A stretch of DNA of 64,000 nt from Vitrella brassicaformis CCMP3155 (lineage: Eukaryota; Protista; Chromerida): assembly GCA_001179505.1 (NCBI GenBank), contig CDMY01000316.1, positions 1-64,000 on the forward strand. Reading direction: 5' to 3'. The notes beneath the pieces were generated by a model. The model made no database searches. It saw only the letters and a list, made by a program, of their open reading frames with translations, and was not told where the DNA came from. A program made the position numbers and the translations under genes. Shown in pieces: positions 1 through 9,700 of the stretch. Numbering within the stretch: position 1 is the first letter of the stretch; each line of letters begins with the position of its first letter.

Positions 1-214
1 GTCTGTCCGTCTGTGTTGTCTCTCTAGCCTCCCAGTGTGTGCCTACGTATCCGCCACAAGGTCCGTCCCCTCGCCGATCACATACTGAGGCAGACAGCAC
101 ATGCATTTGACCCGCACATCAGTCAGGGGAACACGGGACTCTCACTCAGAGCGGACGGCACGAAAGCATGTGTGTGGCTGGCTACCTCTCTCTCTCTCTC
201 TCGGTTGGCTGAGA

Positions 215-385
215 TCAGTTGGTTGTCTGGTGTGTTTGGCTGCGCGTATGGATGGCTGGTATGCTTCGCGTGTGGGTTTGACCGTTACCAGAGAGAGGAC
301 ATCCGCACCATGACACTTTCGTAACAGAATGGCATCCAAAATGAAAAGGTAACCCCGAGATAAAGCCGACTGGTGGGACCCCCAT
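215..385 (-). pseudogene. Degenerate type-B small ORF (MGVPPVGFISGL..., apparent frameshift)
   Basis: The N-terminus matches MVFPPVGFLSAL of 753-905. The hydrophobic continuation FILDAILL, like FIVDSLM, is in a shifted frame. Confidence 0.5.
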
Positions 386-491
386 TGCAGCGGCAGCGGG
401 TGGGAAAGAGGGTGGGGAGAGGGAGGGAGACGATGGTTCCCCTTAAGGGGAGTGGGGGATTTGGCGGGAGGGTTGGGTAGCCTCTGTGCGA

Positions 492-644
492 TTAGAACGG
501 CGTCCTCTCCCATGGGGAGAGCTCCAGCGGCTCACTACAGGACAAGCCAATCGTGTGTCCCAAGAGGCAGATAAAGGCCAAAATGCTCACGATCTCGAAG
601 ACTTGAGCTATCCACAAGCGAAAGCCGACAGAGGGGAACATCAT
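492..644 (-). CDS. 50-aa hydrophobic small protein, type B (MMFPSVGFRLWIAQVFEIVSILAFICLLGHTIGLSCSEPLELSPWERTPF)
   Basis: ATG at 644 and TAA at 492. Same length and stop position as paralogs 1225-1377 and 753-905. One predicted TM segment. Confidence 0.6.
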   Translation of the reverse strand: MMFPSVGFRLWIAQVFEIVSILAFICLLGHTIGLSCSEPLELSPWERTPF

Positions 645-752
645 CGCCAGAGGGTGAGGGTAGGGAACACGGGAGGGAGACGGGAGGATCAGGGCTGCTT
701 CTGCCGCGGGGTACTGATGGTGGATGGAGGGCGGAGTTGCAGAATCAGGTGC

Positions 753-905
753 CTACCACGGCGTCCGCTCTCGTGGGTCCAGCCATCGTGGGCCGCCACA
801 ATCAGACCCGAGGGCATACTTTAGGCAGCACAGAACCCCGACAACCATGAGAGAATCGACAATGAAGGCAAGCGCCGAGAGGAAGCCGACAGGGGGGAAC
901 ACCAT
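753..905 (-). CDS. 50-aa hydrophobic small protein, type B (MVFPPVGFLSALAFIVDSLMVVGVLCCLKYALGSDCGGPRWLDPRERTPW)
   Basis: ATG at 905, 50 codons. Shares the MVFPPVGF start and ERTP(W/F)-stop end with the other B copies despite a divergent middle. Confidence 0.6.
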   Translation of the reverse strand: MVFPPVGFLSALAFIVDSLMVVGVLCCLKYALGSDCGGPRWLDPRERTPW

Positions 906-1030
906 CGCTGCCTTCCTCCAGACGACAACGCCGTTCGCGGCGGGCGGGTGGGAAAGGGGAGGGTGGGGGACAAGCCGGCTGCTTGTGCAGCGGGGCTGAG
1001 GGGAGGAAAGAGAAGGAACGGCTGAGTGAT

Positions 1031-1183
1031 TCAGTGGGAGACGCTCGGGGCGCAGCGCCACTCGTATTCCCCCACTTGGATCAGGTACCACACTCGTGCG
1101 CAGAAATCCTGAACGTAGTCGAGTATGCCGAGGATACAGTAGACGACGAGGCCAATGTCGATGAGCGAAACCACATCAAGCAT
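1031..1183 (-). CDS. 50-aa hydrophobic small protein, type A (MLDVVSLIDIGLVVYCILGILDYVQDFCARVWYLIQVGEYEWRCAPSVSH)
   Basis: Differs from the 1796-1951 paralog by several third-position synonymous changes, conservative V/L/I swaps and an in-frame 3-nt indel. Confidence 0.65.
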   Translation of the reverse strand: MLDVVSLIDIGLVVYCILGILDYVQDFCARVWYLIQVGEYEWRCAPSVSH

Positions 1184-1224
1184 GGTTCTCTTCTGCTGGT
1201 GCCACGAAGGGAGCCGCTGTGCGC

Positions 1225-1377
1225 TTAGAAAGGAGTCCCTTCCCATGGGGAGAGCGTCAGCGGCTCACTACAGGCCAAGCCAATCGTGTGTCCCAAGAGG
1301 CAGAGAAAGGCCAAAATGCTCACGATCTCGAAGACTAGGGATATCCACATGCAGAAGCCGACAGGGGGGAACACCAT
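1225..1377 (-). CDS. 50-aa hydrophobic small protein, type B (MVFPPVGFCMWISLVFEIVSILAFLCLLGHTIGLACSEPLTLSPWEGTPF)
   Basis: ATG at 1377 and TAA at 1225. Colinear with 492-644. Confidence 0.6.
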   Translation of the reverse strand: MVFPPVGFCMWISLVFEIVSILAFLCLLGHTIGLACSEPLTLSPWEGTPF

Positions 1378-1477
1378 CGTTGCTTTCCACCGAGCACAGC
1401 GGCAGAGGGCGAGGAAGAGCCACAGGAGGAAGGGAGGACCAACTGGCTGCTTGTGCTGGGTGCTGAGGGCGGGGGGG

Positions 1478-1777
1478 NNNNNNNNNNNNNNNNNNNNNNN
1501 NNNNNNNNNNNNNNNNNNNNNNNNNNNNNNNNNNNNNNNNNNNNNNNNNNNNNNNNNNNNNNNNNNNNNNNNNNNNNNNNNNNNNNNNNNNNNNNNNNNN
1601 NNNNNNNNNNNNNNNNNNNNNNNNNNNNNNNNNNNNNNNNNNNNNNNNNNNNNNNNNNNNNNNNNNNNNNNNNNNNNNNNNNNNNNNNNNNNNNNNNNNN
1701 NNNNNNNNNNNNNNNNNNNNNNNNNNNNNNNNNNNNNNNNNNNNNNNNNNNNNNNNNNNNNNNNNNNNNNNNNNNNN
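1478..1777. other. Assembly gap (300 N)
   Basis: Run of N. Confidence 1.
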
Positions 1778-1795
1778 CCAGAGAAGGAGCCGCAG

Positions 1796-1951
1796 TCAGT
1801 GGGAGACGTTCGTCGGGGAGCAGCGCCACTCGTATTCCCCCACTTGGACGAGGTACCACACTCGCGCACAGGTGTCACGGAGGGCGTCGAGTATGCCGAG
1901 GATGCAGTAGACGACGACGCCAATGTCGATGAGCGAAATCAGATCAAGCAT
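1796..1951 (-). CDS. 51-aa hydrophobic small protein, type A (MLDLISLIDIGVVVYCILGILDALRDTCARVWYLVQVGEYEWRCSPTNVSH)
   Basis: Paralog of 1031-1183 with a coding-type substitution pattern on the minus strand. Confidence 0.65.
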   Translation of the reverse strand: MLDLISLIDIGVVVYCILGILDALRDTCARVWYLVQVGEYEWRCSPTNVSH

Positions 1952-2094
1952 GGCTGTTGGTTCTTCGCGGGGGAGACGCGGGGTCAAGATTGTGTTATCA
2001 ACACGCTTCTATTCACGAGACTGACGGGTTTGCGAAAAGCATCTCGAAAGCTTCCTTCCCTCCCCCTTGGACGAGATACCACACTCGCGCGCAG

Positions 2095-4043
2095 ATCCAG
2101 CCGCGGGCCGTTGGACAGCCGTTAGAGAAGCTAGCGCTGTACTGCGGCGAGCGCTTTGCCCCTCACCGTGGCCCTCACCACCGCCCTCTGCTGCAGCCAG
2201 GCTCTCCCGCCGGCGCCGCCCGACCCCTCGCGCAGCGCCACCAGCCGCCCCTTGACCACCAACTTACCCGTCTTCTCGAAGAGCACAACATCACCAGCCC
2301 CTTCTCCAACCTCACCGGCGCTCTTAAGCCGCTTCAAGTAGAAGGACAGCCCTGCGAGAAGGTACTGGAGGATTTCGATTGCGAGAGGATCCATCGGGCC
2401 TTCGGAGGTATGGAGGTCTTCACGGTGCACCCATCTACGTGTGTCTGTCTGTGGGTGTGCACGTGTACGTTTATGTAGCTGACAGGTCCTGAGTTCACGC
2501 TGGCAGACGAGGTCCTCCACCTGGTGCCATACGTGCACCTGGACGGCCTCGTCGACGGCTGCATAGGTCGGGGCGGGCGTGCACACACAGATATTAATCA
2601 TGCACAGAAATCCGTGTGTCGCTCTGGTGTGTAGGCATGCGGGAGGGCGAGAGCCGGCTGGTGAAGGTCAGCACGGCAGGCAGCTCTGGTGGTGCCGAGC
2701 AGGTATGTATGTGTGCACTATATAGATGGGCATTACGACCCTTGGTGTCTTGGGCGATTGTCAGGGTGCTGCTGATGCTGAGCTCGAGCAACGAGGGCGC
2801 CGAAGACGCAGAGGTGCGGACGGGACGGCCTGCGTCCACGTGTATATGGATGGGTGCAGCTGTTGCTCGACGTGGGCCCGGTCAGTCTGCACACGTGCAC
2901 ATACATTTATTTGTCTTTGAGCGCATTCACTGTATGCGTGTCTTCCTTCACAGAGAAGTCCCGGACCTCACCGATGCCCTCGCAAGGCAGGCAGGTGCGC
3001 GACGCCATGACGCTCAAGGAGCTGCCGAGCCAAGTGGAGGACAAGCTGCTCAAGCAGTGCCAGGTGGGTGGGTGGGTGGGTGAGTGACAGAGAGGAAGGG
3101 CAAACATATACAAACAAACGAGCGCATTTGGGCTGTCGACATGTGGTGTGCAGGATGACCGGGAGCGCAATCTTCGCGCCGGCGTCATCGCCGCCCTGCT
3201 CGACTGCACCAACCTCACCATCCCAGCCAGGTACACTCAGATGCACGTGTAGATAATGCCTGACTGCTGCATGGATTGGATGTCTGCAAATTGTGCACAC
3301 AGAGACGCTCATAGTGGAACACGGCAAGGGCAAGTCGGAGGCCTCCAAGGGCCACGACGTCTCCAAAGTCACCAAGGCGGCCGCACTCAGCGACTACCTA
3401 CGCCGGAGACAAGCCGCCATCACACAGTAGGCCTTCAACAGGGCGGCTCTGCTGGACTGCAGACATACACACGTGTGCGTTTGTGTGTGTTGGCAGGGAG
3501 CTGCAGGCGTCATTTATCCTGGATGAGATCGCCGAGAGAGAGGGGCTGACTGTGGCGGTGAATTTCCTTAGTACACGTGCCTGTCTGTGTTTGTTAGCTC
3601 TCTGTGTGTGTCTGTGTAGCCTGACGAGCTGCAAATAAACATCGACACGGTGCAGCAAGACATGAAGACACGGTGGCACACACACGCGCAAGAGAGAACC
3701 CCCCCTCAGCCACACACCCCCAACGCACATATGTCATTTGTGTGTGCAGGAATCCCGAGTGCAGTCGAAGCTCGAGGCAATGCTCATGGCGCAGCGGGTC
3801 ATCGACTGGATCACAGAGAGGTCCGTGACACCCATCCACCCACCCAACCACATACGAAGATAATGGTGGCATCCATCCATCCATCCATCCATTTGTGCTG
3901 ACTACAGGTCGTCAATCAGCTGGGTTCACGAGGCCGAACTGTATGGCGGCAATCTCGACGACAGGCTGGACACGCTCATGCGCCAGACGGAAGCCGCCAA
4001 GGCGACAACCGACACCAAGACAAACACCCGCAACGGCCCCTAA
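2095..4043 (+). CDS. Multi-exon hypothetical protein, partly coiled-coil; start not resolved
   Basis: GC3-rich exon blocks separated by GT-AG introns with CA/TG repeats, e.g. LLEEHNITSPFSNLTGALK, ELPSQVEDKLLKQCQ and NLDDRLDTLMRQTEAAK...NGP-TAA. No ATG found in the first visible exon frame. Confidence 0.55.
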
Positions 4044-4556
4044 TGCTGCTGAGGTACGTTAGGTTCCTGACACACACACAGTGTGCGCAGAAAGATGGAA
4101 TTCTTGATAGATGCGCGCATGTGTGCATGTGTGCATCCCTGACTGTAGGCACATGTCGACTCAGGATGTTCTGGCCCGGCGGGCGCAGCGGACCATGAGC
4201 AGTCTCTGGTGATGTGGTCGGTGCTTGTGTACATATTGAGCTCACGGCAAGGCACACGGAGACCTATCTTGTGTGTGGACTGTATATCTGTACACCAGTT
4301 ACGGGCCTGTTGTGTGCATGCGGTGTGTGGAGGTGTCAAGACCTCACATGCATCGATTTCACCGATTGAATTTCATTGCCTGTTTCGCGTAGTGTCCACA
4401 CATACGTTGACCGTTTGCATCTTCCCCTTCCCCCCCTCTCCTTCAAAATGATGAAAACAAAGTACGACAACAAGAAAAAAAAGAAAGAAAAAGAAAAGAG
4501 ACCGGGGTCTCAAGACATCCATCCATCCACGTGAGACGCAGCCAGCCAGAAACCTC

Positions 4557-5847: not shown

Positions 5848-6673
5848 CTACCTGGCTCCCCCCTCTGTCTCTCTCTCTGTTGCCGTGCTGGAAGAGGGCG
5901 GGTGAATGTCTTTGCCCAGCAGATTTTGCAGTGAGCTGAACAGCCGGCTGGAGCTCAGCATCTCGGTCGTGGCGATGACGTACCTTCTCGCGCCGCCCTC
6001 CAGCTGGCTCAGCTTGCGCAGGGCCGCCACCTCTGAGTAGGTGCATCCGCCAAGAAAGAACACCACCACCACGGTCGGCCGCTGAGTAAGTGAGACAACC
6101 ACACACGGACACAAACAGACTGGCGCGCGCATCTGGAGGGGGTGGAAGCTGTCTTGCCCACCTTGTCCTTTTCCCTGTCTTTGTTGCGGTCGCTGCTGTG
6201 AAGGGACGTGCCTGACGTACAGCAGAGAACACATGCCACGTATGCATCCATCCATCCATTGTGTGCGTGCATCGCACCGACCGTAGTCAGGCAGCGCGAC
6301 AGTGGTGGGCGGGCTGCCCGGCTGCGTGGAGGGCTGCTGACGCACCTCCAACGCAGGACCCTACACACATACATGGACAGCAAGGAGACACCAATGCAGG
6401 TTTGTTTGTTGGTTGCTGCGTGAGTGTCCCCACCCACCCATAGCAGGTTGAGTCCTTCCTGGCAGCTGCGCCAGCCCTTTGGGTGGCTGTGCAGCTTCTG
6501 AACCAAACGCACTGAACAAGACACAGAGAGAGAGAGGTCATGTTGATGCTGTGTGGCTGTCTGTGGGTGGGGGGAGGGATGTGTGGTGGGATGCCTGATA
6601 GTGGTGCATATCCCGAGCAGACGTATGAGATGTCCAACTGGGCCTCATCCTCCTCTACTATCAGATGGAAACT

Positions 6674-6704
<31 letters not shown>

Positions 6705-9700
6705 GGGGTCAGGTGATGTGCCGCTGCTGGGCGTGTAGCGCTGTGTGCACCTTTTTGATTTGTTCCCATGTGGATCTGCCCTGGTATGACCTCAGCAGCC
6801 CCACCGCATCCAAATTCAGCAGCGCCCCCAACTCGACATAGCCATATGACTGACAACCAACGGAGACACACACAGAGAGAGAAGACACATGCGCACCTCC
6901 GCAGTACACACGCATTTCGTGGGTGTCCGTCCCATGTTACACACACCTGTATGATGCCTCGCTTGAGTGCGTCGAGGTGTTTGCTGCGGATGCCGTTGTT
7001 GACCACCGACGTCAGACACAGCAAACGATACAGCTGACACACACACACACATGTTTCTCGTTCCATCTTTGCTGTGTCGGCCACTCTCACCGACCTCTTG
7101 TATAGGCAGGTTCTTGTCGGTGTAGTCCTCCAGCGCATTCAGCACCTCGCTGCTGGCACCAGACCTCGTGATCTCTGAGCACCCACCGACCGATTTGGTG
7201 AACAGACAGCCCCTCCCCGTCCCTCCCTCCTGGTGTGTGTGTGTGTGTTACCGTCTTCGAGCTGCAGCCGCTTGTGGTAGTCCTCCTCCTTGGTGATGTT
7301 GGATATGTGAGACGCCAGGTTGACGTGCGTCGCCAGGGAGCTGTGCTGCGCCTGACCGCATAATGCACATTAAGGGCACACACATATGGGTGGATTGTCA
7401 TTTGGCGTGACCTGACCTGCTCAGCTGACTGACCTGTACGCCTTTGAATTTCTTCATGAACTCGTTGATCTCGGATATGTTTTTGAGGTTGTCCTTCTCG
7501 CGGTAGGTCTGCTGGATCTGGTTGGCCTTAGCGTGCAGCAGCGGACCTAACACACCGATGTGCAAATCACTGCACATACAGCAAAGGAACCACACACAGG
7601 TGTGGGTGCATGTCGCATGATGCACGCACAGCACTCACCGTATTTCGGCGAACAGTGGGTCGCTCGAGGTCAGGGGCACCTGGCCAAAGCATGACAGACG
7701 GAGGGGAGTGACCATACACACATGGATCTGCCTGGACTGACTTGTGTCATTACTTTGGTTTTCCTGTTGGTGGTCCCCTGTGGCGGCGTCAGGATGGGCG
7801 GCCCGACTTCAATGTGAGCTGACAAGACACAGAGACAGACACAGACCAGCAGCAGAGCACCCATCCGTCTCATTCATGGGTGCGTTGACTGTGTGCCGCG
7901 CTGCTGCCCTACTGTGGTGGATGTTAAAGACGGCGTCCAGGAGACCTGTGGATGCAGAGAAGGCACCACGTGATCACTTGTGGATGTGTGTGATTGTTGC
8001 AATGGTTGGGTACCTTCATAGGTGAACTGTGAGCAGAGGGGCGTGATGAGGTCCACACGGCGGTCAATCAACACCAGGTAGTCTATCTCGCACACACCTG
8101 ACATACAGACACACACACACAATACGCGTGCATACCGACACGCACAGAGGCCCAGTGACTGCCGTTTTCCTGTCTTCACCTTTGCTGCCCTCCCCATCTT
8201 TCTTGCCGCTCGCCACTCCTGCGGCCGCATCAGCAGCAGACGCTGAACCAACCACCCACCCCACCCCACCCCACCCACACGCACATCCACAGACAGATGC
8301 GTGTGTACCCATCCATCCCCCTCTGAGCGCATGCGTAGGATGCATTTCATCAGCTCACCTTCACCGAGTATGTATTTGACGGGCGGCACTGCCGGCAGAC
8401 TCGACGATGAGAACGAGTCGCCACCAGCGCCTGCCGACGTGATGGCCGTGCTGTGCGTGTCGGTGGTGGCCATCTCCTCCCGACGAAAGCGCAGCAACAG
8501 CTCAGTCACATACTGACACACATAGACACAGACACACACACAGACGCCGCCGACGCACACACAGTCGAGAAAGAAGACAAAGATCAGCTCTGTCTGTCTG
8601 GTGCTGTGTGTGTGTGAGGTACCTTTGCGGCCGACCCGATGGCCCGTATGTTCGGGATGGCCCCGCCGCAGTGCTGCTGCAGCTGCCAGATGGACAAGGC
8701 CGCATCGTAAAGGGTCGACGGATCGCCGTGCTAACAGCACACAGACAAGCACACGGACAGGCAGATCGATGCGCAGAGATGGATGGATGGAGGTATGGAT
8801 GGATGGGCCCATTCATCCATCTCATGTATCTCATTGATTGCGCTTACCAGGTGGAAGTCGGTGAAGGCGTGTCTGTGTTCGAGTGAGAGGACGTCGCTAT
8901 CGAGGGGCATCAGCAGCAGGGGGTAGGACCGCAGCTGCACGTCCGCATAGACGTTCTGCTGCTTCAGCGCCTGCACAGATGAAAGAAAGAAACGACACGC
9001 GCAGAACGACTGACTAGATGTGATGGTCGATGGATTGACGCCGCTGATCTGCCTGTCCTGTCTGTGGATTGACCTTACCTGCACGCAGAACTCTGTCCGT
9101 CTCGGCACGAACACCACTGCATACGTCTGAAAGACAGACACGCACACGCACAAACAGCGGGTCAAATGTGGTGGGTCGGTCTCCTGCAGCAGTCGGTGCA
9201 TGTGTACCTTCTCGACGCCTCGCCGCTCGCTGGCCTGAATCTGCATTCTGATAACAAACATGCAAACCACACACATGAGTGTGCGCACACTCATGTGCAC
9301 ACACATGAGTGTGCGCACACTCATGTGTGTGTGGCTCGTGTGGAGCTGACAGGGTGGTGGTGGTCGCTTACGCGATGAGTGGTATGAGTTCGACGGTTGG
9401 CCTGACGAGGAAGATGACCTGCTCGACGTCCGTCGTGATCTCATACGCACCCAACTCAAACCAACTGGTGACGCCATGGTCTCGCAGATCGGACACCTCC
9501 ACAACTGTGTGTGACACACACAGGCAGACAGACAGACAGGCAGGCAGACAGGCGTGTGACGTCTGTCTGTCGATCTGTGTGCTACCTACCGAGTCCCAGC
9601 GGCCCTGCGAGTGTAGAGTCGAGCACCAGCACTTTGCGGCCGGGGTACTGAACACACACACAGAGAGAGAGAAGCGCACAGACAGTGATTCACTCATTCA

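Follow-up and report, generated by a model that had tools for sequence, protein, structure and literature searches.

Nuclear polycistronic mRNAs have, to our knowledge, long been held to be absent from most eukaryotes. Small membrane proteins are systematically under-annotated. In Drosophila, the tarsal-less/polished rice peptides are soluble, 11-32 aa long and members of one family. Class IIb bacteriocins are encoded in operons of bacteria, together with leader peptides, immunity genes and transporters. Among free-living organisms, chromerids are the closest relatives of the apicomplexan parasites. Green algae possess established leaky-scanning bicistrons with a small membrane protein as first ORF, e.g., the TOM22 and OST4 loci (PMC11291117). 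For the apicomplexan Cryptosporidium parvum, polycistronic mRNAs of ordinary genes were reported from long-read RNA (bioRxiv 10.1101/2025.01.17.633476).

An array of tiny ORFs of two types, A and B, was analysed on contig CDMY01000316.1 (C316) of Vitrella brassicaformis CCMP3155. Positions refer to the window, the whole stretch of 64,000 nucleotides analysed. Five intact ATG-to-stop ORFs of 51 or 50 aa were located on the minus strand (A1, B1, A2, B2 and B3). In the direction of reading, the region comprises:

1979-2368, no strand assigned: duplicate of an intergenic segment of contig C299 with 90 % identity, made up of the 3' end of dyskerin/CBF5, intergenic sequence and exon 1 of a signal-peptide gene
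2062-2094, minus strand: A0, what is left of an A ORF (33 nt, encoding CARVWYLVQ), matching A1 at 1839-1871 with 91 % identity and also found in the C299 duplicate
1796-1951, minus strand: A1 ORF, 51 aa, the first, promoter-proximal cistron of the array
1378-1795, minus strand: A1-to-B1 spacer, containing the assembly gap 1478-1777 with C runs on both sides on the coding strand
1225-1377, minus strand: B1 ORF, 50 aa
1184-1224, minus strand: B1-to-A2 spacer, 41 nt
1031-1183, minus strand: A2 ORF, 50 aa
906-1030, minus strand: A2-to-B2 spacer, 125 nt, homologous to the A1-to-B1 spacer
753-905, minus strand: B2 ORF, 50 aa, of an older B type with a CGGP motif common to the C255 copies
645-752, minus strand: B2-to-B3 spacer, 108 nt
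492-644, minus strand: B3 ORF, 50 aa, 80 % amino acid identity to B1
386-491, minus strand: B3-to-B' spacer, 106 nt, pyrimidine-rich on the coding strand
215-385, minus strand: B' ORF, 56 aa, derived from B only at 327-385 (about 19 codons, MGVPPVGF...), the remainder being repeat sequence
1-326, no strand assigned: end of a dispersed repeat, probably a transposon terminus, within which the contig starts and which truncates the last B copy

The A-B units share with the bicistrons of green algae (PMC11291117) a tiny membrane-protein ORF in first position, a short gap between the ORFs, scarce start codons from the first to the second ORF and a conserved collinearity. They differ in their host, a chromerid alveolate, in both cistrons coding for orphan microproteins, in the decaying tandem arrays and in the intercistronic intron-like elements, and they are known from sequence alone. 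The C. parvum case is similar in that several nuclear ORFs per mRNA were reported for a chromerid relative; the Vitrella arrangement differs from it in concerning two microprotein families and in being deduced from genomic letters only. Several related tiny ORFs in tandem at one locus are common to the array and to tarsal-less/polished rice, but the array has two families that are not related to each other, both about 50 aa long and with a membrane helix. With class IIb bacteriocins the pairs would share, as an analogy only, two unrelated small helical membrane-active peptides that are adjacent and co-made; unlike these operons, no leader peptides, immunity genes or transporters were seen.

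The ORF coordinates bear out a preliminary description of the locus, which had listed five minus-strand ORFs of 51 or 50 aa with spacers of 41-125 nt. Its degenerate sixth ORF is B-like over the first 19 or so codons (385-327), but is repeat sequence from 326 down. DNA this rich in GC has many ORFs of such lengths, and 53 with 30 aa or more overlap the first 3.5 kb; beyond chance is the homology among the array copies and to three other loci. Each of the 12 intact ORFs at the four loci had, in its own frame, a periodic GC content of the codon positions (GC1/GC2/GC3 about 0.52/0.40/0.74, GC3 range 0.69-0.79; B3 0.43/0.43/0.75). A bona fide eIF4A exon had, for comparison, 0.60/0.36/0.90. Within the array, the ORFs were 88-90 % identical versus 50-67 % for their flanks. 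B2 and B1 have diverged to 55 % nucleotide identity and are both intact. An A copy at locus C708 carries a 70-nt GT..AG insert in phase 0, and its removal restores the exact family spacing.

Hydropathy maxima of 2.2-2.5 (averaged across 19 residues) indicated one hydrophobic segment in each protein. AlphaFold2 modelled A2 as one helix of residues 4-37 (pLDDT 82) and B2 as one helix of residues 5-31 (pLDDT 74); A and B are thus each predicted to form one long hydrophobic helix, that is, a single-pass membrane microprotein. The prediction of an A2-B2 complex had a score of 0.02, which counts neither for nor against binding. Together with the GC3 periodicity and the higher identity of ORFs than of flanks, the one-helix predictions give computational support to the earlier proposal of coding membrane micropeptides: the A and B ORFs have the look of genuine coding sequences, for membrane microproteins with a single helix that fall into two distinct families. 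A likeness of B to the Pmp3/RCI2 proteolipids had also been considered. Pmp3 has two transmembrane helices and is widespread in fungi, plants and bacteria. Both are very hydrophobic proteins of about 50-57 aa with a proline-proline-x-glycine-like motif by the helix start, but B has one helix instead of a two-helix hairpin and lacks the broad distribution, and the suggestion was dropped after hmmscan against Pfam-A found no match to PF01679 in the window ORFs and nine B members up to an E-value of 10.

The selective record of the copies is mixed. Differences between A copies had been described as synonymous third-position changes, V/L/I swaps and an in-frame 3-nt indel, but are for the most part not synonymous: A1 and A2 differ 8/4/8 times at the three codon positions, including A>Y, T>F and R>Q. 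Recent duplicates had no excess at the third position (8/4/8, 9/2/5, 5/6/5), and dN/dS, based on few sites each, was 0.55 for A1/A2, 0.62 for B1/B3 and 0.34 for the saturated pair B1/B2. The missing third-position excess and the ratios of about 0.55-0.6 point to weak constraint or gene conversion. In the older A pairs across loci, differences were most frequent at position 3, followed by position 1 and position 2. A length constraint, also proposed earlier, is only loose across the families (A 46-57 aa, B 47-55 aa).

Profile searches retrieved A and B copies on one strand and in A-then-B order at C316, C255, C781 and C708; A1 alone as query found a C255 copy with an E-value of 6e-7. Computationally, this supports the proposed pairing of A and B as a unit that is conserved, in unchanged order, across four paralogous loci within this genome. 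Degenerate copies were abundant at C255, C781 and C708, many of them visibly decayed. A profile-profile comparison of A and B revealed no relation, and the idea of the two as distant paralogues was rejected. Relatives outside the genome were found neither in Pfam nor among 1.84 billion protein representatives nor in metagenomes, where a scan with the A profile yielded 45 pattern matches and 0 relatives. The only foreign match of the 1.84-billion-protein profile search, P0003, is 448 aa long, translates a tandem repeat with a unit of 64 aa, has a pairwise E-value of 0.02 to A1 and was rejected as a repeat-summed chance match. Look-alikes of A1 and B2 in the ESM Atlas provided nothing usable. 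An exact look-up in public assemblies, which perhaps lack the records of the own genome, had no entry for P0001 (the annotated A2 protein), P0002, B3 and the C255 A and B copies. In the best reading of these searches, A and B would be two unrelated families restricted to V. brassicaformis.

The preliminary description expected gene finders to miss these ORFs. This was partly wrong: A2 is publicly annotated as the 71-aa protein P0001, extended from an in-frame upstream ATG at 1246, and a spliced model, CEL97210.1, runs over two B copies at C255 and links a part of each. The analysis flags both models as annotation problems, the first being an over-extension of A2 and the second a chimaera of two B copies.

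At its downstream side the array runs into the repeat, which has at least 22 genomic copies of 87-100 % identity, all stopping sharply at 326. The depth was 500-1100 over the repeat compared to about 20 in the flanks, with many differing loose ends at 326/328. B' is a B copy truncated by the repeat or transposon, since its B likeness is confined to the first 19 or so codons and is followed by the dispersed repeat. Nine further contigs with weak matches to the B profile were rejected as copies of the repeat fused into B'. Telomere repeats were sought at the ends of the array-bearing contigs and were absent there. The gap 1478-1777 does not cut an ORF; its distances are 18 nt to the A1 stop and 100 nt to the B1 ATG. 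DNA-run contigs stop in G runs on either side, with 26 G before 1778, and after collapse of the gap the A1-B1 spacer aligns with the uninterrupted A2-B2 spacer. Most likely, the gap is a homopolymer (poly-C/G) tract, and an ORF hidden inside it is unlikely. A hidden B copy, first suggested by the repeat spacing of 733 and 768 nt, was discarded on account of the flanks aligning across the collapsed gap and the contigs ending in G runs.

On the upstream side, the segment 1979-2368 is likely the head-to-head promoter region of the array. The copied first exon of the signal-peptide gene has lost its ATG. At four of four loci the first A lies head-to-head with another gene at a distance of 125-200 nt, and at C255, C781 and C708 a conserved upstream block (AAGCTCGCA) precedes the first A and no later copy. 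A transcription start near 2054, read from contig ends of the RNA runs, was rejected; this is the mRNA 3' end of dyskerin/CBF5 in the C299 paralogue.

Start codons are scarce between A and B. With putative introns removed, the first A-to-B intervals of the four loci contained one ATG in 872 nt versus 9.3 expected (P about 0.0009), a value obtained on the same sequences on which the putative introns were defined; the unspliced intervals had 5 versus 13.3 expected (P 0.006). In the unspliced intervals of C255 and C708, every ATG lay within a putative intron. The control intervals from B to the next ORF were not depleted (19 versus 14.8 expected). A1 has zero internal ATGs in all frames. At C255, C781 and C708, the stretch from the A stop to the B ATG holds intron-like elements of 61-76 nt with GT..CAG ends, similar in scale to the real eIF4A introns nearby of about 65-127 nt (rough estimates from exon ends). 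The inter-ORF distance without these elements is about 44-60 nt at the three loci; in the window, A2 and B2 are 125 nt apart and A1 and B1 118 nt plus the tract, and the A-B spacers there are without a convincing splice donor. The Augustus annotation of Vitrella drew on intron hints from RNA-seq (PMC4501334), and the acceptor in CEL97210.1 is identical to the acceptor inferred here at C255. At this locus the B frame is interrupted by a TGA that lies 9 nt ahead of the B ATG, and the A stop precedes the donor, so A and B are separate cistrons and not exons of one ORF. A fusion of A and B by splicing was likewise rejected: the distance from acceptor to ATG is 90 nt (in frame) in A2-B2, but 85 nt (out of frame) in A1-B1, and stops block it at C255. 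The start context had C or A at +4 in five of five A starts and G in five of ten B starts, with a purine at -3 in all.

A shared transcript per A-to-B pair is plausible from these patterns. The earlier claim of one multi-ORF transcript may stand in this reduced form, by virtue of the ATG depletion, the intercistronic intron-like elements and the one head-to-head promoter region per array; it is not supported for the whole array, where the B-to-next intervals are not depleted. Of four runs whose assembled contigs were placed on the window, the two presumed poly-A transcriptomes (X1, X2) had a contig depth of zero over 400-1950. Contigs of the same two runs do cover the adjoining 2219-2422 segment and the C299 paralogue. 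Leaky scanning hardly explains A2, B2 and B3 on one long transcript, since A2 follows B1 after 41 nt and B1 holds internal ATGs.

Our preferred reading, with a probability of about 0.5, is that the loci consist of tandem-amplified, leaky-scanning bicistronic A-B units of real, species-restricted microgenes. The basic unit would be an A-then-B pair behind a promoter region common to the head-to-head neighbour gene. A and B of a pair would probably be on one mRNA, and a short intron may be spliced from the A-B spacer at the paralogous loci. B would be translated by ribosomes that scan past the A start, which is possible because the stretch from A start to B start is kept almost free of AUG. Units would multiply in tandem and decay by birth-and-death, distal copies losing their starts or gaining deletions or frameshifts, and the last B copy in the window is truncated by the probable transposon. 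Delivery of both products from a single mRNA would suggest a joint role of A and B in a membrane. The ORFs, their paralogous loci, the coding-like composition, the depletion of ATG, the one-helix predictions and the lack of relatives in the searches are observed; that the units are transcribed and spliced, that B is reached by leaky scanning and that A and B cooperate is what we infer.

Two alternatives are unlikely, to a similar degree. The ORFs may be real small membrane-protein genes, each with its own tiny transcription unit in a compact genome, with minimal or overlapping UTRs; the intron-like elements would then be introns in the B 5'-UTR or the A 3'-UTR. Vitrella genes lie a median of 92 bp apart (PMC4501334), and spacers of 106-125 nt are of like order. 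Close spacing alone hence does not demand polycistrons, which weakens the earlier argument that the spacers are too short for separate genes. Separate units would also account for A2, B2 and B3 being intact though hardly reachable by leaky scanning. Yet scarcely any room is left for a polyA site and a promoter in the B1-A2 spacer of 41 nt or in the 5-19 nt that separate A stop and donor elsewhere, the depletion of ATG is limited to A-to-B intervals, and the upstream block precedes only the first A of an array. Alternatively, the array could be a non-functional, decaying tandem duplication of pseudogenes or never-translated proto-genes, with ORFs kept open by the youth of the copies, the rarity of stops in GC-rich DNA and a homogenisation of the cores by gene conversion. 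The lack of contigs over the array in the presumed RNA runs, near-uniform substitutions across codon positions in recent copies, the many degenerate copies at the three other loci, the location at a transposon cut and a contig end, and the absence of relatives in the 1.84-billion-protein profile search all fit such a decay. It fits poorly with the GC3 periodicity in all 12 ORFs, including lineages of about 45-60 % DNA identity, or with the retention of start, stop, length and hydrophobic helix across old paralogues such as B2 and B1. The frame-preserving intron of the C708 A copy also speaks against it, and the ATG depletion is hard to account for without translation.

Somewhat more doubtful still is a stronger version of the preferred reading, in which A and B would form an obligate two-component membrane system, e.g., a pore of hetero-oligomers or a pair resembling toxin and antidote. 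Such a system would be encoded in fixed order on a leaky-scanning bicistronic mRNA with an intercistronic intron, and some conflict, e.g., with microbes, viruses or in self/non-self recognition, would drive the rapid birth-and-death.

It is very improbable that the ORFs are exons of a larger spliced protein, or uORFs of a gene past the contig end. In favour, the B1 and B2 frames are open over long distances before the ATG, B3 shares its frame with the B2 stop, two B copies are partly joined in CEL97210.1, and the downstream side of the array is missing where the contig ends. Every copy has, however, its own ATG and stop, the candidate acceptor of A1-B1 is out of frame with B1, and the two stops at C255 interrupt the A and B frames; moreover, the arrays at C255, C781 and C708 fade into degenerate copies and not into a large gene. 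A non-coding RNA cluster with incidental ORFs, e.g., polycistronic snoRNAs, matches the tandem units of about 150 nt and the short spacers, but is hardly credible given no Rfam match (best E-value 0.21, far below the gathering score), no unit folding better than shuffled sequence (z -0.14 to +1.25), and codon-position periodicity and conserved ATG and stop that indicate coding.

If the preferred reading is true, AUG-depleted paired microgenes in a chromerid would extend leaky-scanning bicistrons beyond the green algae. The loci would then offer a compact natural test case for the balance of products, with two 50-codon cistrons, several diverged paralogues and copies of which some have an intercistronic intron and others lack it. 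Should the two-component reading be true, A and B would be the first nuclear bicistronic family of microproteins of this kind in the lineage toward the apicomplexan parasites.

The end of contig C316, of which the window represents the first 64 kb, carries an array of small open reading frames from two families, A and B. The composition given in the preliminary description, five intact minus-strand ORFs of 50-51 aa with spacers of 41-125 nt, was confirmed:

1796-1951, minus strand, A1, 51 aa, ATG-to-stop
1225-1377, minus strand, B1, 50 aa, ATG-to-stop
1031-1183, minus strand, A2, 50 aa, ATG-to-stop
753-905, minus strand, B2, 50 aa, ATG-to-stop
492-644, minus strand, B3, 50 aa, ATG-to-stop
215-385, minus strand, B', 56 aa, ATG-to-stop

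The spacers between successive ORFs measure 41, 125, 108 and 106 nt. Since 3.5 kb of this GC-rich DNA are overlapped by 53 ORFs of at least 30 aa, the presence of the array ORFs by itself proves nothing; the weight of the observation rests on the protein identity of 80 % for A1/A2 and for B1/B3 and on the kinship of B2, an older relative with 38 %. The TAG stop of B2 (753-755) is in frame with B3, and the intervening 108-nt spacer (645-752) contains no other stop. The shared frame is probably chance, one in three; a read-through of the TAG would fuse two B helices into one product. A 33-nt remnant of an A copy is located at 2062-2094. The plus strand holds spliced exons at 2400-4200, with peptides such as ILDEIAEREGLTV that we took to be reminiscent of trigger factor.

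Computation lends good support to the coding, single-helix, two-family reading, in line with the membrane micropeptides proposed earlier. In the ORF frame, GC1/GC2/GC3 values of ~0.52/0.40/0.74 were found for 12 of 12 intact ORFs at four loci; a genuine eIF4A exon of the same genome has 0.60/0.36/0.90. In-array duplicates are 88-90 % identical within the ORFs versus 50-67 % in the 100-nt flanks, and the differences in older A pairs peak at codon position 3 and are lowest at position 2. The A copy on contig C708 is interrupted in phase 0 by an insert of 70 nt with GT..AG ends, the excision of which brings back the exact family spacing within the helix. For the young duplicates, dN/dS values of 0.55 and 0.62 (differences by codon position 8/4/8 and 9/2/5) indicate a weak constraint. 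No unit folded better than shuffled RNA, and Rfam yielded no match. A single hydrophobic segment is present in each protein (Kyte-Doolittle maxima 2.2-2.5), and AlphaFold2 predicted a single long helix for A (residues 4-37, pLDDT 82) and for B (residues 5-31, pLDDT 74). The conserved features are, in A, the initial MLD together with I-(D/N)-x-G-(V/L)-V-x-Y, DFC-x-RV and GEWxW, and in B, the initial M-x-F-P-P-x-G together with a CGGP motif that precedes L-(N/D)-P. A comparison of A with B revealed no kinship between the families.

The pairing of A and B recurs in the genome. A1 as sole query matched an A copy on contig C255 (E 6e-7), and profile searches of the genome contigs located three paralogous arrays, each with A leading and B following on the same strand:

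C255:17634-20300, array A then B, same strand; head-to-head neighbour eIF4A
C781:266189-267450, array A then B, same strand; head-to-head neighbour RuvBL2-like
C708:286675-288000, array A then B, same strand; head-to-head neighbour an unnamed ORF

The first A and the first B are intact in each of these arrays; distal copies have lost the ATG or carry deletions or frameshifts. On C255 (locus coordinates L010), a truncated-A/full-A combination is present in two copies of 99 % identity (6103-6340 and 7630-7847): a 31-aa truncated A ORF with its own ATG, then a GAAAAGTGA stretch, then a full-length A body in the -1 frame without ATG. This combination reflects decay or, alternatively, a shifted product with two helices. 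The distal array parts of C781 (L011 4980-5451, contig end) and C708 (L054 7205-7705) are nearly identical, both at or close to contig ends, and the distal B copy of C781 is broken in frame by a 1-nt deletion relative to its C708 counterpart. This likeness could reflect a recent segmental duplication, allelic contigs or sequencing error.

At all four loci the first A starts 125-200 nt head-to-head with another gene, in the window with a decayed copy of the first exon of a signal-peptide gene. This copy belongs to a 390-bp segmental duplicate of 90 % identity, window 1979-2368 versus C299:125847-126249 (L056). The C299 copy comprises the dyskerin/CBF5 3' end, an intergenic stretch with an A remnant, plus exon 1 of the signal-peptide protein; in the window, the exon lacks the ATG and small indels are present. 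At C255, C781 and C708 a conserved block with AAGCTCGCA lies upstream of the first A only. At C255 (L010 5575-5625) and C708 (L054 6550-6590) it is preceded by the telomere-repeat-like GGGTTTAGGG / GGGTTTGGGGTTAGGG. Both elements sit 5' of the first A in the short head-to-head promoter regions, where the telomere-repeat-like motif resembles the plant 'telo-box' promoter elements.

Of the possible mechanisms, a putative A-B bicistron is the best supported: both ORFs of a pair would lie on one mRNA, and B would be read by leaky scanning past the A start. In the arrays of C255, C781 and C708, the region from the A stop to the B ATG contains an intron-like element of 61-76 nt that starts 5-19 nt past the A stop; its donor reads GTA(C/T/A) and its acceptor is pyrimidine-CAG. 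Introns of the adjoining eIF4A gene have ~65-127 nt by rough estimates of exon ends. With the putative introns removed, the first A-start-to-B-start intervals of the four loci had one ATG in 872 nt versus 9.3 expected (P ~0.0009), the introns being defined and the test run on the same data; unspliced, the intervals had 5 versus 13.3 expected (P 0.006), and at C255 and C708 every ATG falls within the putative introns. The control, B start to next ORF, had 19 versus 14.8 expected. Such a depletion is the signature of leaky-scanning bicistrons; these have been demonstrated by experiment for green algae, with ORF1 frequently coding for a tiny membrane protein (PMC11291117). Polycistronic mRNAs are also reported for the apicomplexan Cryptosporidium (bioRxiv 10.1101/2025.01.17.633476). 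A and B as exons of a single ORF were ruled out at C255: the A stop lies ahead of the donor, and the B frame is closed by a TGA located 9 nt upstream of the B ATG.

Several observations weigh against the bicistron reading. Vitrella genes are typically ~92 bp apart (PMC4501334), thus tight spacing alone does not demand polycistrons. B1 carries internal ATGs and the B1-A2 spacer has only 41 nt, so leaky scanning would hardly reach A2, B2 and B3. The window's own spacers have a strong acceptor-like tract and no good donor. Two small runs, presumed to be RNA from their resemblance to poly-A transcriptomes, have contigs on window 2219-2422 and, in the C299 paralogue, on the 3' end of dyskerin; over 400-1950 they gave none, and contigs drop rare RNAs.

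No ORF crosses the assembly gap at 1478-1777 between A1 and B1. The contigs of two DNA-like runs break off in G runs on either side, with 26 G ahead of 1778, and no contig spans it. Once the gap is closed up, the stretch between the A1 stop and B1 can be aligned to the A2-B2 spacer, which has no gap and in which just a few pyrimidines correspond to the gap site. The gap is therefore most likely a poly-C tract (coding strand) rather than 300 nt of hidden sequence. The C255 array also holds a gap flanked by C runs (L010 7305-7625; window counterpart 1467-1477 and 1778), and there truncated A-type ORFs have their PLPPP start encoded by the C run of the coding strand. Long C homopolymers probably broke the assembly at both in-array gaps.

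B', described as a degenerate sixth ORF, has a B-derived start, but its remainder belongs to the terminal part of a dispersed repeat (window 1-326). The repeat has at least 22 genomic copies of 87-100 % identity, all terminating at 326, a depth of 25-50x the flanks and many different continuations at 326/328; B' is thus a B copy cut after ~19 codons. Weak matches to the B profile on nine other contigs were not B copies, but the repeat fused into B'. On C1003 and C268, copies occur in pairs at distances of ~1.9 and 3.7 kb, so the repeat may be an LTR; the presumed RNA runs are rich in it.

Neither A nor B matched a Pfam family up to E 10, Pmp3 included, and the proposed likeness of B to Pmp3 was rejected. 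Word-indexed searches of 5.8 billion proteins found two Vitrella gene models only, both entered in NCBI and UniProt: P0001, in which A2 is lengthened to 71 aa from an in-frame ATG upstream, inside B1, and P0002 (CEL97210.1), a chimaera joining two B copies of C255. When 1.84 billion representatives were searched exhaustively with a profile, two entries came back: P0001 and the foreign protein P0003, a 448-aa repeat translation that was dismissed as a repeat-driven chance match. A metagenome scan found no relatives of A. Small ORFs are seldom predicted, so these results, from protein catalogues and metagenomes with Chromera and other eukaryote genomes outside their scope, show an absence from catalogues, not from nature.

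The weak constraint and the many dead distal copies fit a rapid evolution by birth and death, in which gene conversion may take part. The proposed co-production of A and B suggests that the two predicted membrane helices may act together.
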